The notes below the pieces were generated by a model. It was not told the DNA's origin. It saw only the letters and a program-made list of their open reading frames with translations, and did no database searches. A DNA stretch of 63,748 nucleotides, counting the filler, from Octopus bimaculoides (taxonomy: Eukaryota), in assembly GCF_001194135.2 (NCBI RefSeq). It is 5 parts of 4 records of this genome, joined end to end, with 100 filler letters (N's around TTAATTAATTAA, not from the genome) between each part and the next. Parts side by side here need not be neighbours in the genome. Positions count along the whole stretch, not along the records: positions 54,861 to 63,748 come from NC_068987.1; 4 more parts are not named here. One strand, given 5' to 3'. The position numbers and the translations under genes were made by a program. Below are positions 54,861 through 63,748 of the stretch, in pieces. How positions within the stretch are numbered: position 1 is the first letter of the stretch; each line of letters opens with the position of its first letter.

Positions 54861-56199
54861 ATATATATATATATACATATATTCCCATATTCTGTCCATA
54901 TTAGCTATGGACAGAATATAAGAATTTATATTCTCTACCAAAAATTAAAAAAAACGAAGAGAAGCAAACTACTTACAGGTATTGAAGTGTCGCTACTTTC
55001 TGACATAAATCATCGGGAAGGGCTTCGATTGCAGCTCTATCAAATTGTATAATCGTTAATCTATGACTCCCCGTCAAATCCGGAAAAACTGTTTGTTGGT
55101 CAGCCTTTGAAATGACTCTGCAAATACAGAAATAGATGTATTAATTGTGTTTTGATTTAATAATTTTGCGGAGTTTAAACATACTTATTAGAGGAATGAG
55201 GAATCTTTTCCGGGAAGTACGCCACATGAGACATCAATCATCATAATACGGGACGCATTACAAAAAATTTCAATTGACGGTAATCTTTTCGTTAGTCGTG
55301 TCATTCAGAAAGTCCCGCAGGCAGTTATTTCCCACAGAACTGGCTTAGGACACTCTGCATTCCCTTTAGAGGGGTGGATTTGTAGTATAGTTAGAGCTTT
55401 AGATAAAATGCTTGACTTTATTTAGAAAGGACAGTGGTAGTGATATGAATAAGGCATGGGCGTTGGACACGGCAAGAGTACTGTGAAAATGAGACACGAG
55501 CAGACTGGGAGTGCCTGAGGAATTCAGTAGGAGCCTAGTCAGCTCCAAGGAGCAAAGACCATTATAGAAAAGATAGAAAAGGCGCAGAGGCAGAGAAATG
55601 GGAGAGAAACAAGAGACAGCTCGTTTGAGGGCTAGAGCCTAGGATATATTTGTAAATGATTTATGCTAATCTGTTAGATGGCCCCTTTTCTAGATGCGGT
55701 CCACAATGTCTGTATGTACAACACCTGCACCGTCCCAAAACTGAGCGTTTCTTTAATGACATAATAGCAACAAAGGCACAAACATTCAATATTGATGTCA
55801 CACAAAGGAATTACAAGACAATGTGAGGAACGTGCGAGCACACACAAAACAGGGGGACACACACACACATACACACAAACACGCGCATACAGACATACAC
55901 ACACACACATACTATGTGTGTGTGTGTGATAAACAAGAGCAGGAAATAAGTAATACAGATTAAAAATTTTTTAGAAGCAACAAATGCGAAAAACCCATCC
56001 CTATAGGAGTGAGAGACCACCACTTAAGAAGAAGAACAATTCTGGTTTATTAGGGCTTATTTGTGTTCAATTTTATATGTTGGTTTAATTTTCGTTATTT
56101 AGTCATTTAATCTTAGTCATTTAGGCGTTTTGTGTAATCGCCTCTTATTTTCCTCTTAATTAGTGAAATACTCCTGATGACTCTCAACCCACCCTGTAG

Positions 56200-56990
56200 T
56201 CCATTCAGCATTTGTATCAGTACTCGTTATTGATCCGGGTAACCGTGTAGTCCGGACACTGTGGACGAAGAATTGCTTTTGCCTCGGGTGATCTTCAGTA
56301 GCTTGCTTGTAATCAGACAGGACTCGTTTTTTTTATTTTGCTCCACGTTTGTTTTATTACAATCCTTAACCCCTTTGCTCCCTTCGTCTTACAATACAGT
56401 CTTCCCACATTCAGAAAACGATGGGTCAGGGATGAAAGCAGGGACTTCTTTGGTTTTTCGGCACACTATCTCTTCAGTTCCTGGTGTTAGCAGAACTTAA
56501 CTGAAATACGCTAAAATTTCTTTGCTGACAAACCTTTCTCTTTTCAATACTAATTGATGTAATTCTTGCAAACAACTCATTTAAATTCAGATTACAATTT
56601 ATTACTCAGCCTTGTTTCATTTTCCTGTGCTTAGAATCCTTTAATGATTCTCCTATCAAATCTTCTGAGTCTCTAATCTTTTGAATCCATAGCTTCCCTT
56701 CAGCACGTATTATTGCAGCATGTGTTGATGTAGTCTTTCCTCCTTCACCTTCTTCTTTCTCTACATCAACTGACCTACTTGTCGCCACATCTACAACAGC
56801 CACACACTTTAGACACCATACGCTAAACTTGCATCGATTTCACAAACGGAGACCTTGACAGCACCATTCAGTGGGAGTCTTGCTAATACTTCTTCTTGTC
56901 CACTCCAAATGTTGAACTTCAGTATCACTGAGGATCTGTTCTGGCGAAGTTACATCCTTAGCATAGATAGAACTGCATATAAAAGACTGA
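56200..56990 (-). pseudogene. Old RTE-like ORF2 relic
   Basis: Weak, frameshifted resemblance to the RTE C-terminal region; boundaries approximate. Confidence 0.35.
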
Positions 56991-56999
56991 CCCTTCTTT

Positions 57000-57370
57000 T
57001 CAAAACCAATAGTTGCTGATACTCTACAAGGCTCAAGTGAGGTCTACAACTACTTCCAGGACGGTGCTACTGCTGTGCATACTAATATCCTGGACAACAT
57101 TTAGAAACAGGATATTGGACTAAGTGATATGAAATCATTTAGTGATAGATTCCAGCCTCATGTTCACATGTGTTCTGTTTCTCTGCTATCTTTTCAGTCA
57201 CTGTTACAATGGCTTCTATTTTTCAGATCTAGCTGATCTTGTACCTCTACCGTTCAAGCAGCACCGACTCACTCGTCTCGCTACTTCTCGTTACTCTTAC
57301 TACTTCCACCATACTCTGATCATACATTGAGCACCGTGCACAATCAATCCACCCTAGAACATCGGCGATC
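57000..57370 (+). pseudogene. CR1/L2/Jockey-group LINE ORF2 3' relic
   Basis: LCYLFSHCYNGFYFSDLADLVPLPFKQHRLTRLA resembles the LFYRYY.G.CSSELA.LVP...R.TR ending of this group. Confidence 0.5.
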
Positions 57371-59647
57371 TGGATTCTTTTACTAGCTAATGTCTTTTCT
57401 ACAAGTGTTATTCCACAACAAAATATGCAGATTACTTCTACCGATCTTTGAAGCATCAATTTTACCGATTTTTGAAGGCTCACAATAAAGGATAAAAGCC
57501 CTGTAATTTCTTTCAAACTTACCAAATAAAAAGCAAAATGCAAAATGAATTTTCTTAATTGCTTGATTTTTTTAAAAATTAATTTGAGATATTCAGCTCT
57601 GACAAAACCCATGTCTAAAGCTATTCTTAAACCTAATTTTACGGTGTAAATTTCATGATGAACTCCTTTGTTTGAACTTTGTGGGTCAAGTTTACACATG
57701 ACATTTTTTAATGTTGTATTTTTCCTTCAATTATCCCCTATCTAAGTGTGTAATACTGTTCATTAGGAAACTGAGCTGGGGATGATGATAACACTAATTA
57801 TAGCAGCCATTAAATCTCGGTACGGTTGATCCAGTATTTATTTATCAATTTATTTATTTATATATTTATTGCTTATTTGTTTCCCTGTAAAATGTACACG
57901 ATAATTTTGATAATAAAAGCGTTGATCACCAAATTGTTACTTTCCTTTCAGGATTTTATGATTTGTATATTAATTGTGTTCATGATTTAATGCTCCAATA
58001 ATTTTTTCTTCAAAATGAAGATTACAATGATGATCACGTTAATGTTGCTGCTACTGCCACCGTTCCTGCTGCTGCCACTGCTGCAGCTGCTGCTGCTGCT
58101 GCCGCCGCCGCTGCTGCCGCCGCCGCTACTGCCGCCGCTGCTACCGCCGCCGCNNNNNNNNNNNNNNNNNNNNNNNNNNNNNNNNNNNNNNNNNNNNNNN
58201 NNNNNNNNNNNNNNNNNNNNNNNNNNNNNNNNNNNNNNNNNNNNNNNNNNNNNNNNNNNNNNNNNNNNNNNNNNNNNNNNNNNNNNNNNNNNNNNNNNNN
58301 NNNNNNNNNNNNNNNNNNNNNNNNNNNNNNNNNNNNNNNNNNNNNNNNNNNNNNNNNNNNNNNNNNNNNNNNNNNNNNNNNNNNNNNNNNNNNNNNNNNN
58401 NNNNNNNNNNNNNNNNNNNNNNNNNNNNNNNNNNNNNNGCCACTATCGTCTCTGCCATCAGAGTACCACTACTACTTATTAAGCTCAAGGGCTGACAGTG
58501 ATGCAACAAAATGCAACGAGAACAACGTTGAACAACGAGAAATTTACAAAACACCTTTAAGTTGGACAAACGACATTATATGAATAAATAAATCTAGAGC
58601 AAAATAAGAGCCGAACTACTCTGTTTACAGGACTGTTCGTCACACGCTATGAGTTAAAGCAATATGATTTTGATGTATCTTCTTTTCTTTTCTCTTTAAG
58701 TCAGGAAATTACCAAGCGCGGGTATCAGATCGGATGACAGATTAAATCTACTGCTCTACTAAGCCCAGGGCATGATTTGAACTCAAAAGGCCAAGTGATG
58801 AGAGAAATATCGTAGGGTATATGGTCAATCCATCTTTGAGTTCTGTCAAACCACAGTCTTGGATTTTTATTTTTTAGTAACTCCGCAAGAATGAAATCCA
58901 AGAAGTGACCTCGGTAGGAATTTAACATAGACTAGAGAATCGAAACAACAAATATTGTATGTCATTCTGTCTAACTCTGCCAATTCGCCACCTGGTGGAA
59001 GGATGTTAGGTAAAACAGAGACAACAACGAATCCATTCAAGTTATTCATTGAATTCCCATATGCAATGTTCATTTTTATTAGGAAATTGAAGATGTCAAA
59101 AATATATTTTATTTTAAAAGAATTTTTAAAAATAACTATTTAAAATATTATGCATATTCTATATCAAATATCTATATAATTATAAAATATAATGAGATAT
59201 ATTTTTATCTGATGTATAAGAATATGATGTATGAGAATATGATATTTATAAACGAAAAGTAAAACATATTTTAAATTTTTGAAATGAGAAATTAATCAAT
59301 AACTAGTTTGTTAGATGTTTGAAATACAATTGTATTTTTAAAAATCCCAATTTACTATTTATGAGATACAAAAACATAAAAAAAGGATAACGTAATATTA
59401 CTACGTGCCACTAGACCGTGTAAGGGGCCGTGTTAACTTAAATTTCATATCGTCTCTATTTCTCTCTATTGCAAAGGCACTGTATAGTGATTAGGTGTGT
59501 GCGTTTGAATGAGTTCAAGATAGTAGAGGTTCTGCGGAAAAAGGAATCGAGATTTGAGATGTTTATTGCGTTGTTTCAGGCATGATATGACAAGGAAGGA
59601 GACACCTATTACTTTGACAAGTTTGTATAACTCGGTTTGCTAGATCC

Positions 59648-59926
59648 GTTGTTGTTGTTGGCACTCCGTCGCTTACGACGTCGAGGGTTCCAGTTGATCC
59701 GATCAACGGAACAGCCTGCTCGTGAAATTAACGTGCAAGTGGCTGAGCACTCCACAGACACGTGTACCCTTAGCGTAGTTCTTGGGGGAGATTCAGCGTG
59801 ACACAGAGTGTGACAAGGCTGGCCCTTTGAAATACAGGTACAGCAGAAACAGGAAGTAAGAGTGAGAGAAAGTTGTGGTGGAAGAGTACACCATCCCCTG
59901 CCGGAGCCTCGTGGAGCTTTAGGTGT
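59648..59926 (-). mobile_element. SINE family E, 3' part ending in (CAA)n; head lost in gap
   Basis: Shares the ACACCTAA(A)GCTCCACG.GGCTCCGGCAG...CCACAACTTTCTCTCACTCTT module with family D (18221-18310), then has a different tail. Confidence 0.75.
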
Positions 59927-60618
59927 NNNNNNNNNNNNNNNNNNNNNNNNNNNNNNNNNNNNNNNNNNNNNNNNNNNNNNNNNNNNNNNNNNNNNNNNNN
60001 NNNNNNNNNNNNNNNNNNNNNNNNNNNNNNNNNNNNNNNNNNNNNNNNNNNNNNNNNNNNNNNNNNNNNNNNNNNNNNNNNNNNNNNNNNNNNNNNNNNN
60101 NNNNNNNNNNNNNNNNNNNNNNNNNNNNNNNNNNNNNNNNNNNNNNNNNNNNNNNNNNNNNNNNNNNNNNNNNNNNNNNNNNNNNNNNNNNNNNNNNNNN
60201 NNNNNNNNNNNNNNNNNNNNNNNNNNNNNNNNNNNNNNNNNNNNNNNNNNNNNNNNNNNNNNNNNNNNNNNNNNNNNNNNNNNNNNNNNNNNNNNNNNNN
60301 NNNNNNNNNNNNNNNNNNNNNNNNNNNNNNNNNNNNNNNNNNNNNNNNNNNNNNNNNNNNNNNNNNNNNNNNNNNNNNNNNNNNNNNNNNNNNNNNNNNN
60401 NNNNNNNNNNNNNNNNNNNNNNNNNNNNNNNNNNNNNNNNNNNNNNNNNNNNNNNNNNNNNNNNNNNNNNNNNNNNNNNNNNNNNNNNNNNNNNNNNNNN
60501 NNNNNNNNNNNNNNNNNNNNNNNNNNNNNNNNNNNNNNNNNNNNNNNNNNNNNNNNNNNNNNNNNNNNNNNNNNNNNNNNNNNNNNNNNNNNNNNNNNNN
60601 NNNNNNNNNNNNNNNNNN

Positions 60619-60649
<31 letters not shown>

Positions 60650-60790
60650 GGGAGAATTTACGAAAAAAAAACAACAGACGAAGACAGGTGGTGTAAACAA
60701 CAAATGGATGTATTAGTTTAACGCTCGGGAATAGAGAAAGTCTTTGACGTTTCGAGCTAGGCTCTTCAACTGAAAGGAACACAGAAAGAA
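60650..60790 (-). mobile_element. Penelope-type terminal repeat relic with decayed minimal hammerhead
   Basis: Minus strand 60772-60746: CAGTTGA-A-GAGC-CTA-GCTC-GAAACGTC. It has the palindromic ACGT stem III and GTC site, but the core differs from CTGATGA at two positions. Confidence 0.45.
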
Positions 60791-60900
60791 ATAAGGAGAG
60801 AAACAAGGAGGAAAGAAATATAAATGTAGTGGACAGTGATCTGCAAAATAGCTAGTTGTGAAATCTCAAGAACAGATCAAAGTAGGAACTATACTAGTCG

Positions 60901-61281
60901 CCAAACCAAAGTGGCTGTTCCATGTTACTACTGGTTTAACCCCAGGCAGATCTTCCGTCGGCTGGTCATCAGTGTGACGCTGCACGATTTGTATAAAATA
61001 TATATTCCTAGCAGAGGGAGCGAACCGCCATCATCATCTAGCAGGTAACTTGATCGCTCTGGTAGACAGGTGCTCGCGACTGAGGATGAGTAAAATAACT
61101 CGAAACTGAAACTGAACCAGTCTCGCGATCCTGTTAACTGCTAGAGGGTGGTAGTGGTCCGCTCTCCCTGCTATCAATATACAGTGTTTATAACGAGTGT
61201 AGCGTCGCACCGATAACCAGCTAGCGGAAGATCTGCCTAGGGTTAAACTAGTAGTAAGATGGAACAATCATTTTGATGTGG
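60901..61281 (+). ncRNA. ~380-nt imperfect long inverted repeat (rod-like RNA) capped by a hammerhead ribozyme; candidate retrozyme or viroid-like element
   Basis: 60916-60985 pairs in register with 61266-61197: 60/70 Watson-Crick, 5 G-U, 5 mismatches (manual count). Pairing continues inward to 61057/61125 and outward to about 60901/61281. Confidence 0.75.
61065..61135 (+). ncRNA. Full-length type I hammerhead ribozyme; predicted cleavage 3' of C61122 (GUC)
   Basis: Stem I TCGCGA(61074-79)/TCGCGA(61123-28); core CTGAGGA (61080-86) plus an extra T; stem II GAGT/ACTC with loop AAAATA; GAAA (61102-05); stem III ACTG/CAGT with a 9-nt loop; C17 = 61122; distal stem I GACAGG(61065-70)/CCTGTT(61130-35) beyond a TGC/T internal loop. 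Confidence 0.88.
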
Positions 61282-61294
61282 GGATTGATTTTTT

Positions 61295-61386
<92 letters not shown>

Positions 61387-62699
61387 TATATATATATATA
61401 TTTATATAGAATTACATATACATACATATAATGTAAAGTAAATGAAAGCAAAATATGCTCAGGATAGATAGCACAGAGTAGGGCTCAAATGTATAGGAAC
61501 TTAAATTCCAACTTCATCCAGGCTGGTGTCGCAGCATCGAGAGTTAGCTATAAGTGCAATCTCTACTAAGCTGTTTTGGCGGTAGTAAAGTTTATAAATA
61601 TAGTTAGGCTTGAGACATATTTTTACATGGAACATAAAATACAGATTACAGAGTAAAGAAAACTGTGTAAAATCTTATCTCGACAGCTGTTTCAAGATGA
61701 CCATGATTCACGCTATAACGATATTCATAAGTAATATTGAATGATATCACAGGAGTACATCCAGTGACACTTACAAATGAAATTGTTAAAGTAAGTTAGG
61801 CATCAATTTTCAAGAGCAGGGTGACAAATGCAAATTGTCTAGCAGTGTCAGCAAATATATAGCTACAAAAACAATAGAGAAGGGTCGTAAAAAAGGGGTT
61901 GGAGGAAGCAAGGGGAATAATAAAATAGAAGGCGTGGTTAAGAGATGATAGGAGATGAAGAGAGAGCTAGATAAAAAAAAAAACAGGTATAAAAACAAAA
62001 ACATGAAGTCAATAGTAGGCCAAAGAAATTATGTTGAAAGTTAATCTAGTCGTTGACCATAAAATTGTCAGATAAAAATGCAGAAAAGAGTAGCAGAGAC
62101 AATCAAGTGAGGGGTGTGTGAAAATTAAGCTTTAAGGTAAGAGAGGGCGGGGTGGGAGACAATAGCAGAAGAAAGTACGGCAAAGAAAAGATGAGAAATT
62201 ATACTGTTTTTACATAATGAATAAAGGTCTTGTAGAATTTATGACTGCAAGAGAAATTTATATATATATATATATATCCAAATTTATCAAAATTCATACA
62301 TTACTATATTTTGCATAATAAATAATAAAAATTAAAAATTTAGAGAAGGATGTAAGAACCAAGTAATAGAAGGATATATAAACCAATTTAAACCCTAAAA
62401 ATGTAGAATACTTTTATATAAAATGGAAACCTCATAATGCTTCATCCTAGCAAATGATTAAGGTAGTCATGATAAGACCATTCAACAATGAATCCATAAA
62501 TAAATTTAGATTTCATCTGAGGAAGAAGTCCACATTTTCTATTGACTGAAAACCAGGGATTAAAGGCAAAATATAGGATAATTAAGTTCTATAACACATA
62601 AACTTATTTAAAAAACCATAAGAGAATATAGTTATATAAAATCATTTCCAGCATTATAAAAAAGTCTTAAAGGATGTACGAACATAAGCTGTAGATATA

Positions 62700-62782
<83 letters not shown>

Positions 62783-63748
62783 CACACACACACAAAGATA
62801 TCATATATATATATAAAGAATATTTTATAATCATAAAATGTAATTACAAATAGCTAAAAAATATCAATGTAATTACCATATTGTATTATATTTTACAATG
62901 ATTAACAGTAGACAGAAATTATAAGCCCTCCGCAAATCATTGAATGTTACACCAGTATATACGAGAGTAAATAGAAATACAAAATACAAAATATAAAAAC
63001 ATGATATAATATAAAAGAATAAATAAAATGAAAAAATATTTATATAAAATTTCAATAAGAGATTTATAAAATGAAAATATAGACATAAGGTTGAAAGAGT
63101 TTTCATTATTTCATTATTGAAGCTATAGAATACATACTGGATATAAAGAGTGATAAAGGATGAAAAATAAAAATAAAAATAAAAATAAATAAATGATAAT
63201 AAGAATAAATAAATAACTAAATAAATAATAAGGATAGGTCGAGGTGTTCTTAACAAAGCAAATTAAAAAATAAATGAAGATGAGAATACCATTGGATGCA
63301 GTTTTATAAAGTAAGATGTAATATTACAAGCACTGATATATGTAGAATAATATAGTTCCTAGGGGTATGGAGTACGCCTAAGGGAAGCGTATGATCTGAT
63401 AATTAATTATAAATATACGTATTATGAGTGATAGGGAAGAAAGTCTTAGAACTGAAGGAAAAACAGTGCAATTACCGTTTAGGATGAATGCATACTAATC
63501 TGGTAGCGGTTATATTATATATGATTATATAATTTACTACACTAGAGGTAAATTACTTCATAAAACTGCATCCAATGGTATCCTCATCTTCATGTATAGT
63601 AATACCCTTTTATAAATAAATATATTTTGGGGAATAAATTATGGATTTTTCCCTTATGAGGTTTTTTCACGCTAGCTACTTGATAAATTCTTATAAAAGA
63701 CTTCATCGTATTATTGAATTAATTATATATATATATATATATATATAT

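Follow-up and report, generated by a model that had tools for sequence, protein, structure and literature searches.

A stretch of the Octopus bimaculoides genome is predicted to fold as RNA into a long hairpin of nearly 400 nt that carries a hammerhead ribozyme motif in its terminal domain, and the question it raises is whether this is the genomic copy of a circular, rod-shaped RNA or the product of an insertion process that happened to set two related sequences head to head. The preliminary description favored the former. The locus lies in a window of 63,748 nt, in a single piece of that window (positions 54,861-63,748, from NC_068987.1) that is AT-rich (GC 0.345), laden with microsatellites and non-coding. 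Our analyses support a link between this locus and retroelements and do not favor a rod circle by design; we give about an even chance to a reading in which the 3' ends of one hammerhead-bearing retroelement, both 5'-truncated, lie head to head at the locus, the parent being either a Penelope-like element (PLE) or an element of the retrozyme type. The main features of the locus are as follows.

60898-61057, minus strand: left arm of the inverted repeat, 160 nt, matching the reverse complement of the right arm at 123 of 160 positions with no indels.
61058-61145, plus strand: self-contained type I hammerhead domain, 88 nt, identified by a descriptor match and a constrained fold.
61123-61284, plus strand: right arm, 162 nt from the predicted cleavage site on, of which the repeat portion is 61125-61284 (160 nt).

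In an ungapped comparison the two arms of this 387-nt unit (GC 0.47) are 77% Watson-Crick complementary, with 37 mismatches and no indels, and are separated by a spacer of 67 nt. The boundaries are sharp at both ends of the repeat, with identity dropping to 24-30%: in the register of the arms, complementarity falls from 77% to 8/33 in the center and 10/33 outside. The outer ends of both arms coincide at the same point, and the inner end of the repeat, at 61125, is only 2 nt from the predicted cleavage site. A decayed full palindrome was rejected as an explanation, since the center is 24% identical, the level of random sequence. The pairing that had been proposed, nearly end to end with the ribozyme in the terminal domain, is thus borne out, and the size and GC content (47%) are within the limits of non-LTR retrozymes. 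The estimate that the arms differ at one position in five or six needs correction: the figure is 1 in 4.3 if all mismatches are counted, and 1 in 6.4 if G:U is counted as paired.

The unit is predicted to fold with great stability as RNA, both on the plus strand (-210.4 kcal/mol, z -20) and on the minus strand (-202.4 kcal/mol, z -18), and no shuffled sequence was as stable in either case. All internal loops of the resulting rod are symmetric and there are no bulges. The arm mismatches comprise 22 transitions and 15 transversions, with five CpG-linked, and this spectrum looks neutral. Read on the ribozyme strand, the transition mismatches divide into 12 G:U and 10 A:C (P=0.006 were 80% of them G:U), and this lack of a G:U bias matches the prediction for neutral decay. 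RNA editing was rejected as the cause of the arm divergence based on the 15 transversions and the lack of strand bias. Starting from identical arms, the divergence would amount to about 0.138 per site for each of them (Jukes-Cantor). The differences are not spread evenly: one 40-bp block, 60918-60957 paired with 61225-61264, has only three mismatches, with the remaining arms about 30% different, and this block could be either a constrained duplex segment or a chance occurrence (roughly p 0.02, uncorrected for the choice of block).

As had been stated previously, the element has no credible ORF, in that none of its ORFs has a homolog or a Pfam domain. Nor was any target-site duplication of at least 5 nt detected at any boundary within about 25 nt, also in agreement with the preliminary description, the only direct repeat at the boundaries being a single 4-mer match (TATA) that is within chance expectation. 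Within the left arm, sequences resembling the A and B boxes of Pol III were rejected, as by eye they match only in part and are wrongly spaced.

The hammerhead itself is composed of the following elements.

61074-61079, plus strand: 5' strand of helix I (UCGCGA), paired with 61123-61128.
61080-61086, plus strand: core box CUGAGGA (C3-A9), followed by an extra U (U61087) between A9 and G10.1.
61088-61091 with 61098-61101, plus strand: helix II (GAGU/ACUC) with a 6-nt loop (AAAAUA); the G10.1-C11.1 pair is G61088-C61101.
61102-61105, plus strand: G12-A13-A14 and the GAAA box; the region 61102-61122 runs on through helix III.
61105-61108 with 61118-61121, plus strand: helix III (ACUG/CAGU) with a 9-nt loop (AAACUGAAC), leading into U16.1 and C17.
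61122-61123 junction, plus strand: predicted cut at the GUC box, with U16.1 = 61121 and C17 = 61122.

Helices I, II and III have 6, 4 and 4 bp, respectively, without a mismatch, with helices II and III closed by loops and helix I open-ended. The conserved type I core is complete (C3-U4-G5-A6-N7-G8-A9, G12-A13-A14, the A15.1-U16.1 pair and H17), and the motif conforms to the CUGANGA/GAAAY/RUH rule that has been applied in surveys of retrozymes and PLEs. The hammerhead descriptor found this one match in the whole piece. In simulated sequence, relaxed helix rules gave 0.0075 matches per piece, and the observed helix lengths gave no match in 2000 simulations. These data support the motif as a real type I hammerhead on the plus strand, of the kind linked to animal retroelements, with all core boxes present and the predicted cut between 61122 and 61123, where the preliminary description had placed it. 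It is not, as had been claimed, flawless: there is the additional U61087, there is a tandem duplication of a 6-nt unit, GAAACU, at 61102-61113 in the hammerhead and its loop 3, and no Rfam hammerhead family was matched at E<=1 in the piece or at E<=10 in the 121 nt from 61040 to 61160. The lack of an Rfam match is likely due to the extra U and the long loop 3. Removal of one GAAACU copy would leave a helix III loop of 3 nt (AAC), which is probably the ancestral form of this helix.

For the isolated domain (61058-61145) the fold constrained to the hammerhead, at -27.4 kcal/mol, is only 1.3 kcal/mol above the minimum free energy fold (-28.7 kcal/mol), while for the complete unit the rod is favored over the catalytic fold by 8 kcal/mol. 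With a helix III of 4 bp and a helix I of 6 bp, the ribozyme could, according to these models, act as a monomer. Helix I is the start of a longer, interrupted helix (6 bp, a 3x1 loop, 5 bp, a 3-nt bulge and 8 bp), and its 3' strand, 61123-61145, has two potential partners. One is 61037-61057, which pairs with it at 18 of 21 positions, free of indels and in the register of the arms; the other is 61058-61079, which pairs with it through loops and is separate from the arm. From their sequences, the pairing with 61037-61057 looks like that of a copy, and the pairing with 61058-61079 looks like an evolved RNA helix, interrupted 6 bp from the core by an internal loop as is usual.

The surroundings of the element were considered for traces of how it came to be there, and the two sequences that flank it are as follows.

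60619-60647, no strand assigned: (TA)14 microsatellite at the edge of the N gap 59927-60618, 250 nt to the left of the element.
61285-61383, no strand assigned: right flank, TTGATTTTTTT followed from 61297 by a (TATG)n/(TA)n/(TG)n microsatellite.

The element is therefore flanked by a (TA)n run on one side and by (TATG)n/(TA)n on the other, with an assembly gap 280 nt away, and we consider it possible that 61285-61383 represents a short tail and the microsatellite into which the element was inserted. The gap at 59927-60618 is one of two in the 8.9-kb piece (the other is 58154-58438; together they account for 977 N), and upstream context of the element may be missing there. No Pfam domain of any kind, and so none for a reverse transcriptase or a GIY-YIG endonuclease, was found in any frame of the 8.9-kb piece (977 N included), and the piece has no tRNA-like genes and no direct repeat or second unit of the element, whether tandem or partial.

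Several other repeats were noted in the piece. A 45-nt inverted repeat (63270-63314 and 63553-63597, 93% identity) bounds a unit of about 330 bp, 63270-63597, that looks like a MITE; a 53-nt palindrome (54877-54929, 81% identity) adjoins the left edge of the piece; and a (CTG)n/(GCC)n trinucleotide array (58044-58153) runs into the gap 58154-58438. Matches to Rfam miRNA families (mir-297, mir-466, mir-1277 and others) at 61296-61431, 62689-62816, 55857-55929 and 54870-54933 were dismissed as artefacts, as they are far below the gathering scores and fall mostly in microsatellites, with a small palindrome at 54870-54933. On the minus strand at 59612-59926, with a core at about 59640-59830, there is a GC-richer dispersed repeat whose translation has 45 aa at 96% in common with an internal part of UniParc UPI00078A5774, a 1513-aa gene model for a SAM-bearing type I chitin synthase of animals that also includes microsatellite-coded junk. 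The shared stretch is probably an exonised SINE-like repeat of the same or a closely related animal genome.

Searches for further copies of the element gave no relatives. Its 77-aa ORF and a six-frame concatenation of the element had no matches among 5.8 billion proteins, and the sole matches in an exhaustive search of representative proteins, two bacterial fibronectin-repeat proteins, were judged spurious. Neither a 24-mer of the arm nor the hammerhead core had an exact-pattern match in metagenome, viral and prokaryotic genome collections, and exact look-ups of the ORFs of the window and of the chitin synthase model returned no contigs. Penelope-like elements occur in octopus genomes. The searchable literature yielded no account of cephalopod hammerhead elements; a hammerhead family in octopus would be newly recorded there without being a new type of system.

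For comparison, we folded four experimentally validated retrozymes as circles: coral Amil224, mussel Mg353, and axolotl Ax353 and Ax330 (Supplementary Table 2, PMC7229834), the two axolotl sequences being 12 and 16 nt short in the machine-read PDF copy that was used. The results were as follows.

Four validated retrozymes: fold z -0.9 to -2.9, no DNA-level inverted repeat.
Octopus 387-nt unit: fold z -18.5, DNA-level inverted repeat from end to end.

Since these four retrozymes lack an inverted repeat and the octopus unit has a z of -18.5, the hairpin is more readily understood as an inverted duplication of the type produced by copying than as ordinary retrozyme self-pairing.

In the head-to-head reading, the parent would be either a PLE terminal repeat or a non-autonomous element of the retrozyme type mobilised by PLE enzymes. 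Hammerhead-bearing ends of this parental type would give rise to unit-length, possibly circular RNAs that are turned into DNA by the PLE reverse transcriptase. The direct copy would be 61058-61284 on the plus strand, comprising the full type I hammerhead domain and 162 nt past the cleavage site. The inverted copy would run from 61057 to 60898, so that 60898 is its 3' end and no more than the final ~160 nt of the parent are represented. Its start lies no more than 2 nt from the cleavage site, as if its template had been an RNA already cut by the ribozyme. Such an offset is expected if the template RNA was ribozyme-cut; by chance it would occur with a probability of roughly 2-3%, a value to be read with the fact that the proximity was noticed after the fact. 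The arms would end together at their outer limits because the two copies share one 3' terminus, and the same model explains the unique center, the two pairing registers, the neutral mismatches, the microsatellite setting and the nearby gap. If transcribed, the locus would give an imperfect hairpin of ~160 bp that the ribozyme might nick at its apex. The repeat, the motif and their geometry are directly observed; what we infer from this arrangement is a retroelement origin, a twin-primed insertion, cleavage in vivo and inactivity at present; because there is a single ribozyme with no tandem partner, the locus is most likely a dead insertion.

An arrangement of this kind is a known insertion pattern of PLEs, whose insertions are typically heavily 5'-truncated, often with an inverted 5'-truncated copy abutting the 5' end (PMC8557442), and show a preference for microsatellites such as (TA)n, short tails and breaks in short-read assemblies (PMC8557442). 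In Schistosoma mansoni, pairs of hammerheads on opposite strands 100-700 bp apart, along with solitary motifs, have been ascribed to truncated PLEs. Counter to the head-to-head model, the searches gave no second copy that would reveal the parent family of the element, its true ends or a link to a PLE ORF, and the 8.9-kb piece has no reverse transcriptase or GIY-YIG domain. The absence of indels over 160 nt with 37 substitutions is also somewhat unexpected for old neutral DNA, and the helix III (4 bp, 9-nt loop) and 4-bp helix II are unlike those of typical animal PLE hammerheads. Also at odds with simple decay is the intact ribozyme beside arms that are 23% diverged, as simulations with a neutral rate of 0.138 per site left an unconstrained hammerhead recognizable in just 1.5-3.5% of cases. 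This can be reconciled with the model if the two copies were not identical to begin with, if the ribozyme is under constraint, or if the intactness of the motif is what drew attention to the locus.

The same discrepancy was the best argument of the preliminary description for the rod as the design of the element, and while the improbability of an intact ribozyme under equal neutral decay was upheld, the conclusion drawn from it was not. According to that reading, the locus is a cDNA of a ~387-nt circular, rod-shaped hammerhead RNA, a non-LTR retrozyme or viroid-like RNA, that was opened at the rod tip and whose imperfect rod is functional by design. This we consider unlikely, though it is the alternative to be taken most seriously. 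Its size and GC are in the retrozyme range, retrozyme circles have been described as highly self-paired and dispersed retrozyme monomers exist; in addition, the 40-bp block is almost perfectly paired, and the 8 kcal/mol that separates the catalytic fold from the rod is as in circles that mask their ribozyme. Weighing against a permuted cDNA of such a circle, however, are the four validated retrozymes with no inverted repeat and z values of -0.9 to -2.9, the lack of a preference for G:U on the ribozyme strand and the internal loops, which are only symmetric and never bulged. Were a circle opened at random, the two arms would not be expected to stop together at the tip of the rod; an opening at exactly this point is a coincidence of roughly 2-3%. 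The repeat also stops 2 nt short of the cleavage site, the hammerhead has a helix I partner of its own (61058-61079) beside the copy-like partner at 61037-61057, the additional 22 nt on the left strand would need an explanation of their own, and the piece contains no tandem or longer-than-unit copy. We regard as more doubtful still the proposal that the animal has a hitherto undescribed family of rod-shaped hammerhead RNAs, a retrozyme or viroid-like circle, of which the hairpin would be the native form, with a near-perfect duplex of ~160 bp maintained and a ribozyme of canonical type I architecture plus the PLE-type extra nucleotide. Were it true, the long duplex would be a natural substrate of RNA editing and of small-RNA pathways.

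Two other origins appear improbable. In one, the RNA cut by the hammerhead, ending 3' in C17, would have snapped back and been extended by a reverse transcriptase along its own 5' part, and the blunt hairpin would then have been integrated. This would account for a complementary strand that starts right after C17, for outer ends that are blunt and symmetric, and for arms without indels, but cleavage leaves a 2',3'-cyclic phosphate, from which extension is blocked, and a single continuous register outward from 61079 is predicted, which conflicts with the 21-22 extra nt on the left strand. Self-priming also requires the 23% divergence to have arisen later with the ribozyme intact, and we know of no precedent for it among hammerhead elements. 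The other origin, which we rate marginally lower, lies outside ribozyme biology: a foldback or MITE transposon, or a host hairpin locus for small RNAs or editing, in which the hammerhead is due to chance or is obsolete. Long inverted repeats are common in animal genomes, a MITE-like unit is also present at 63270-63597 and the motif has no Rfam hammerhead match. Nevertheless, a chance motif is expected less than 0.01 times per piece, and far less often at the apex of a hairpin, and the PLE-type extra U together with the pair G10.1-C11.1 speaks for an ancestor that was a real hammerhead. The locus also shows no target-site duplication.

If the head-to-head reading is true, the locus is an ordinary dead retroelement insertion in which the inverted copy starts at the cleavage site. 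It would then record in the genome that the hammerhead cleaved itself in vivo during retrotransposition of the PLE type, a step that the literature consulted still describes as unproven.

Among known systems, the octopus motif has most in common with the PLE hammerheads and the non-LTR retrozymes, each in different respects. With PLE hammerheads it shares the type I topology, the unpaired nucleotide between A9 and G10.1 and the G10.1-C11.1 pair, and with PLE copies it shares microsatellite surroundings, 5'-truncated copies in inverted orientation and the occurrence of the motif singly in DNA that is non-coding (PMC4209133; PMC8557442). In animal PLE hammerheads the extra, unpaired nucleotide is conserved (PMC4209133). 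The helices differ: animal PLE hammerheads are usually minimal, in that helix III is absent or a tiny palindrome, helix II has 6-8 bp and helix I has 4-5 bp, whereas the octopus motif has a helix III of 4 bp with a 9-nt loop, a helix II of 4 bp and a helix I of 6 bp with an internal loop. The locus also differs from PLEs in that no PLE reading frame is present in the 8.9-kb piece.

With the non-LTR retrozymes the locus shares the type I hammerhead, a helix I of 6 bp, a helix II of 4 bp and a non-coding unit of 170-400 nt with a GC below 50% (PMC7229834; 10.64898/2026.07.22.740005). Dispersed monomeric copies of retrozymes are known, and retrozymes are thought to be derived from PLE terminal repeats (PMC7229834; 10.64898/2026.07.22.740005). 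Unlike them, the octopus unit is not in tandem, has one copy in the piece and is a true inverted repeat at the DNA level. Retrozyme hammerheads are also without the extra nucleotide (PMC7229834), in contrast to the octopus motif with its U61087.

The resemblance to viroid-like and satellite circular RNAs consists of a length of a few hundred nt, a predicted rod and a self-cleaving motif; the octopus locus differs from these in being animal genomic DNA between microsatellites, in having its ribozyme, a type I motif that shows PLE traits, in just one polarity, and in the mismatches of its rod, which are exclusively symmetric. From foldback or MITE DNA transposons it is set apart by the lack of a flanking target-site duplication. 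By its sequence, the hammerhead, with canonical helices of 6 and 4 bp, a stable helix III and the bulged nucleotide of the PLEs, is a bridge form between the two retroelement types, and as such it is consistent with a derivation of retrozymes from the terminal repeats of PLEs, as proposed recently.
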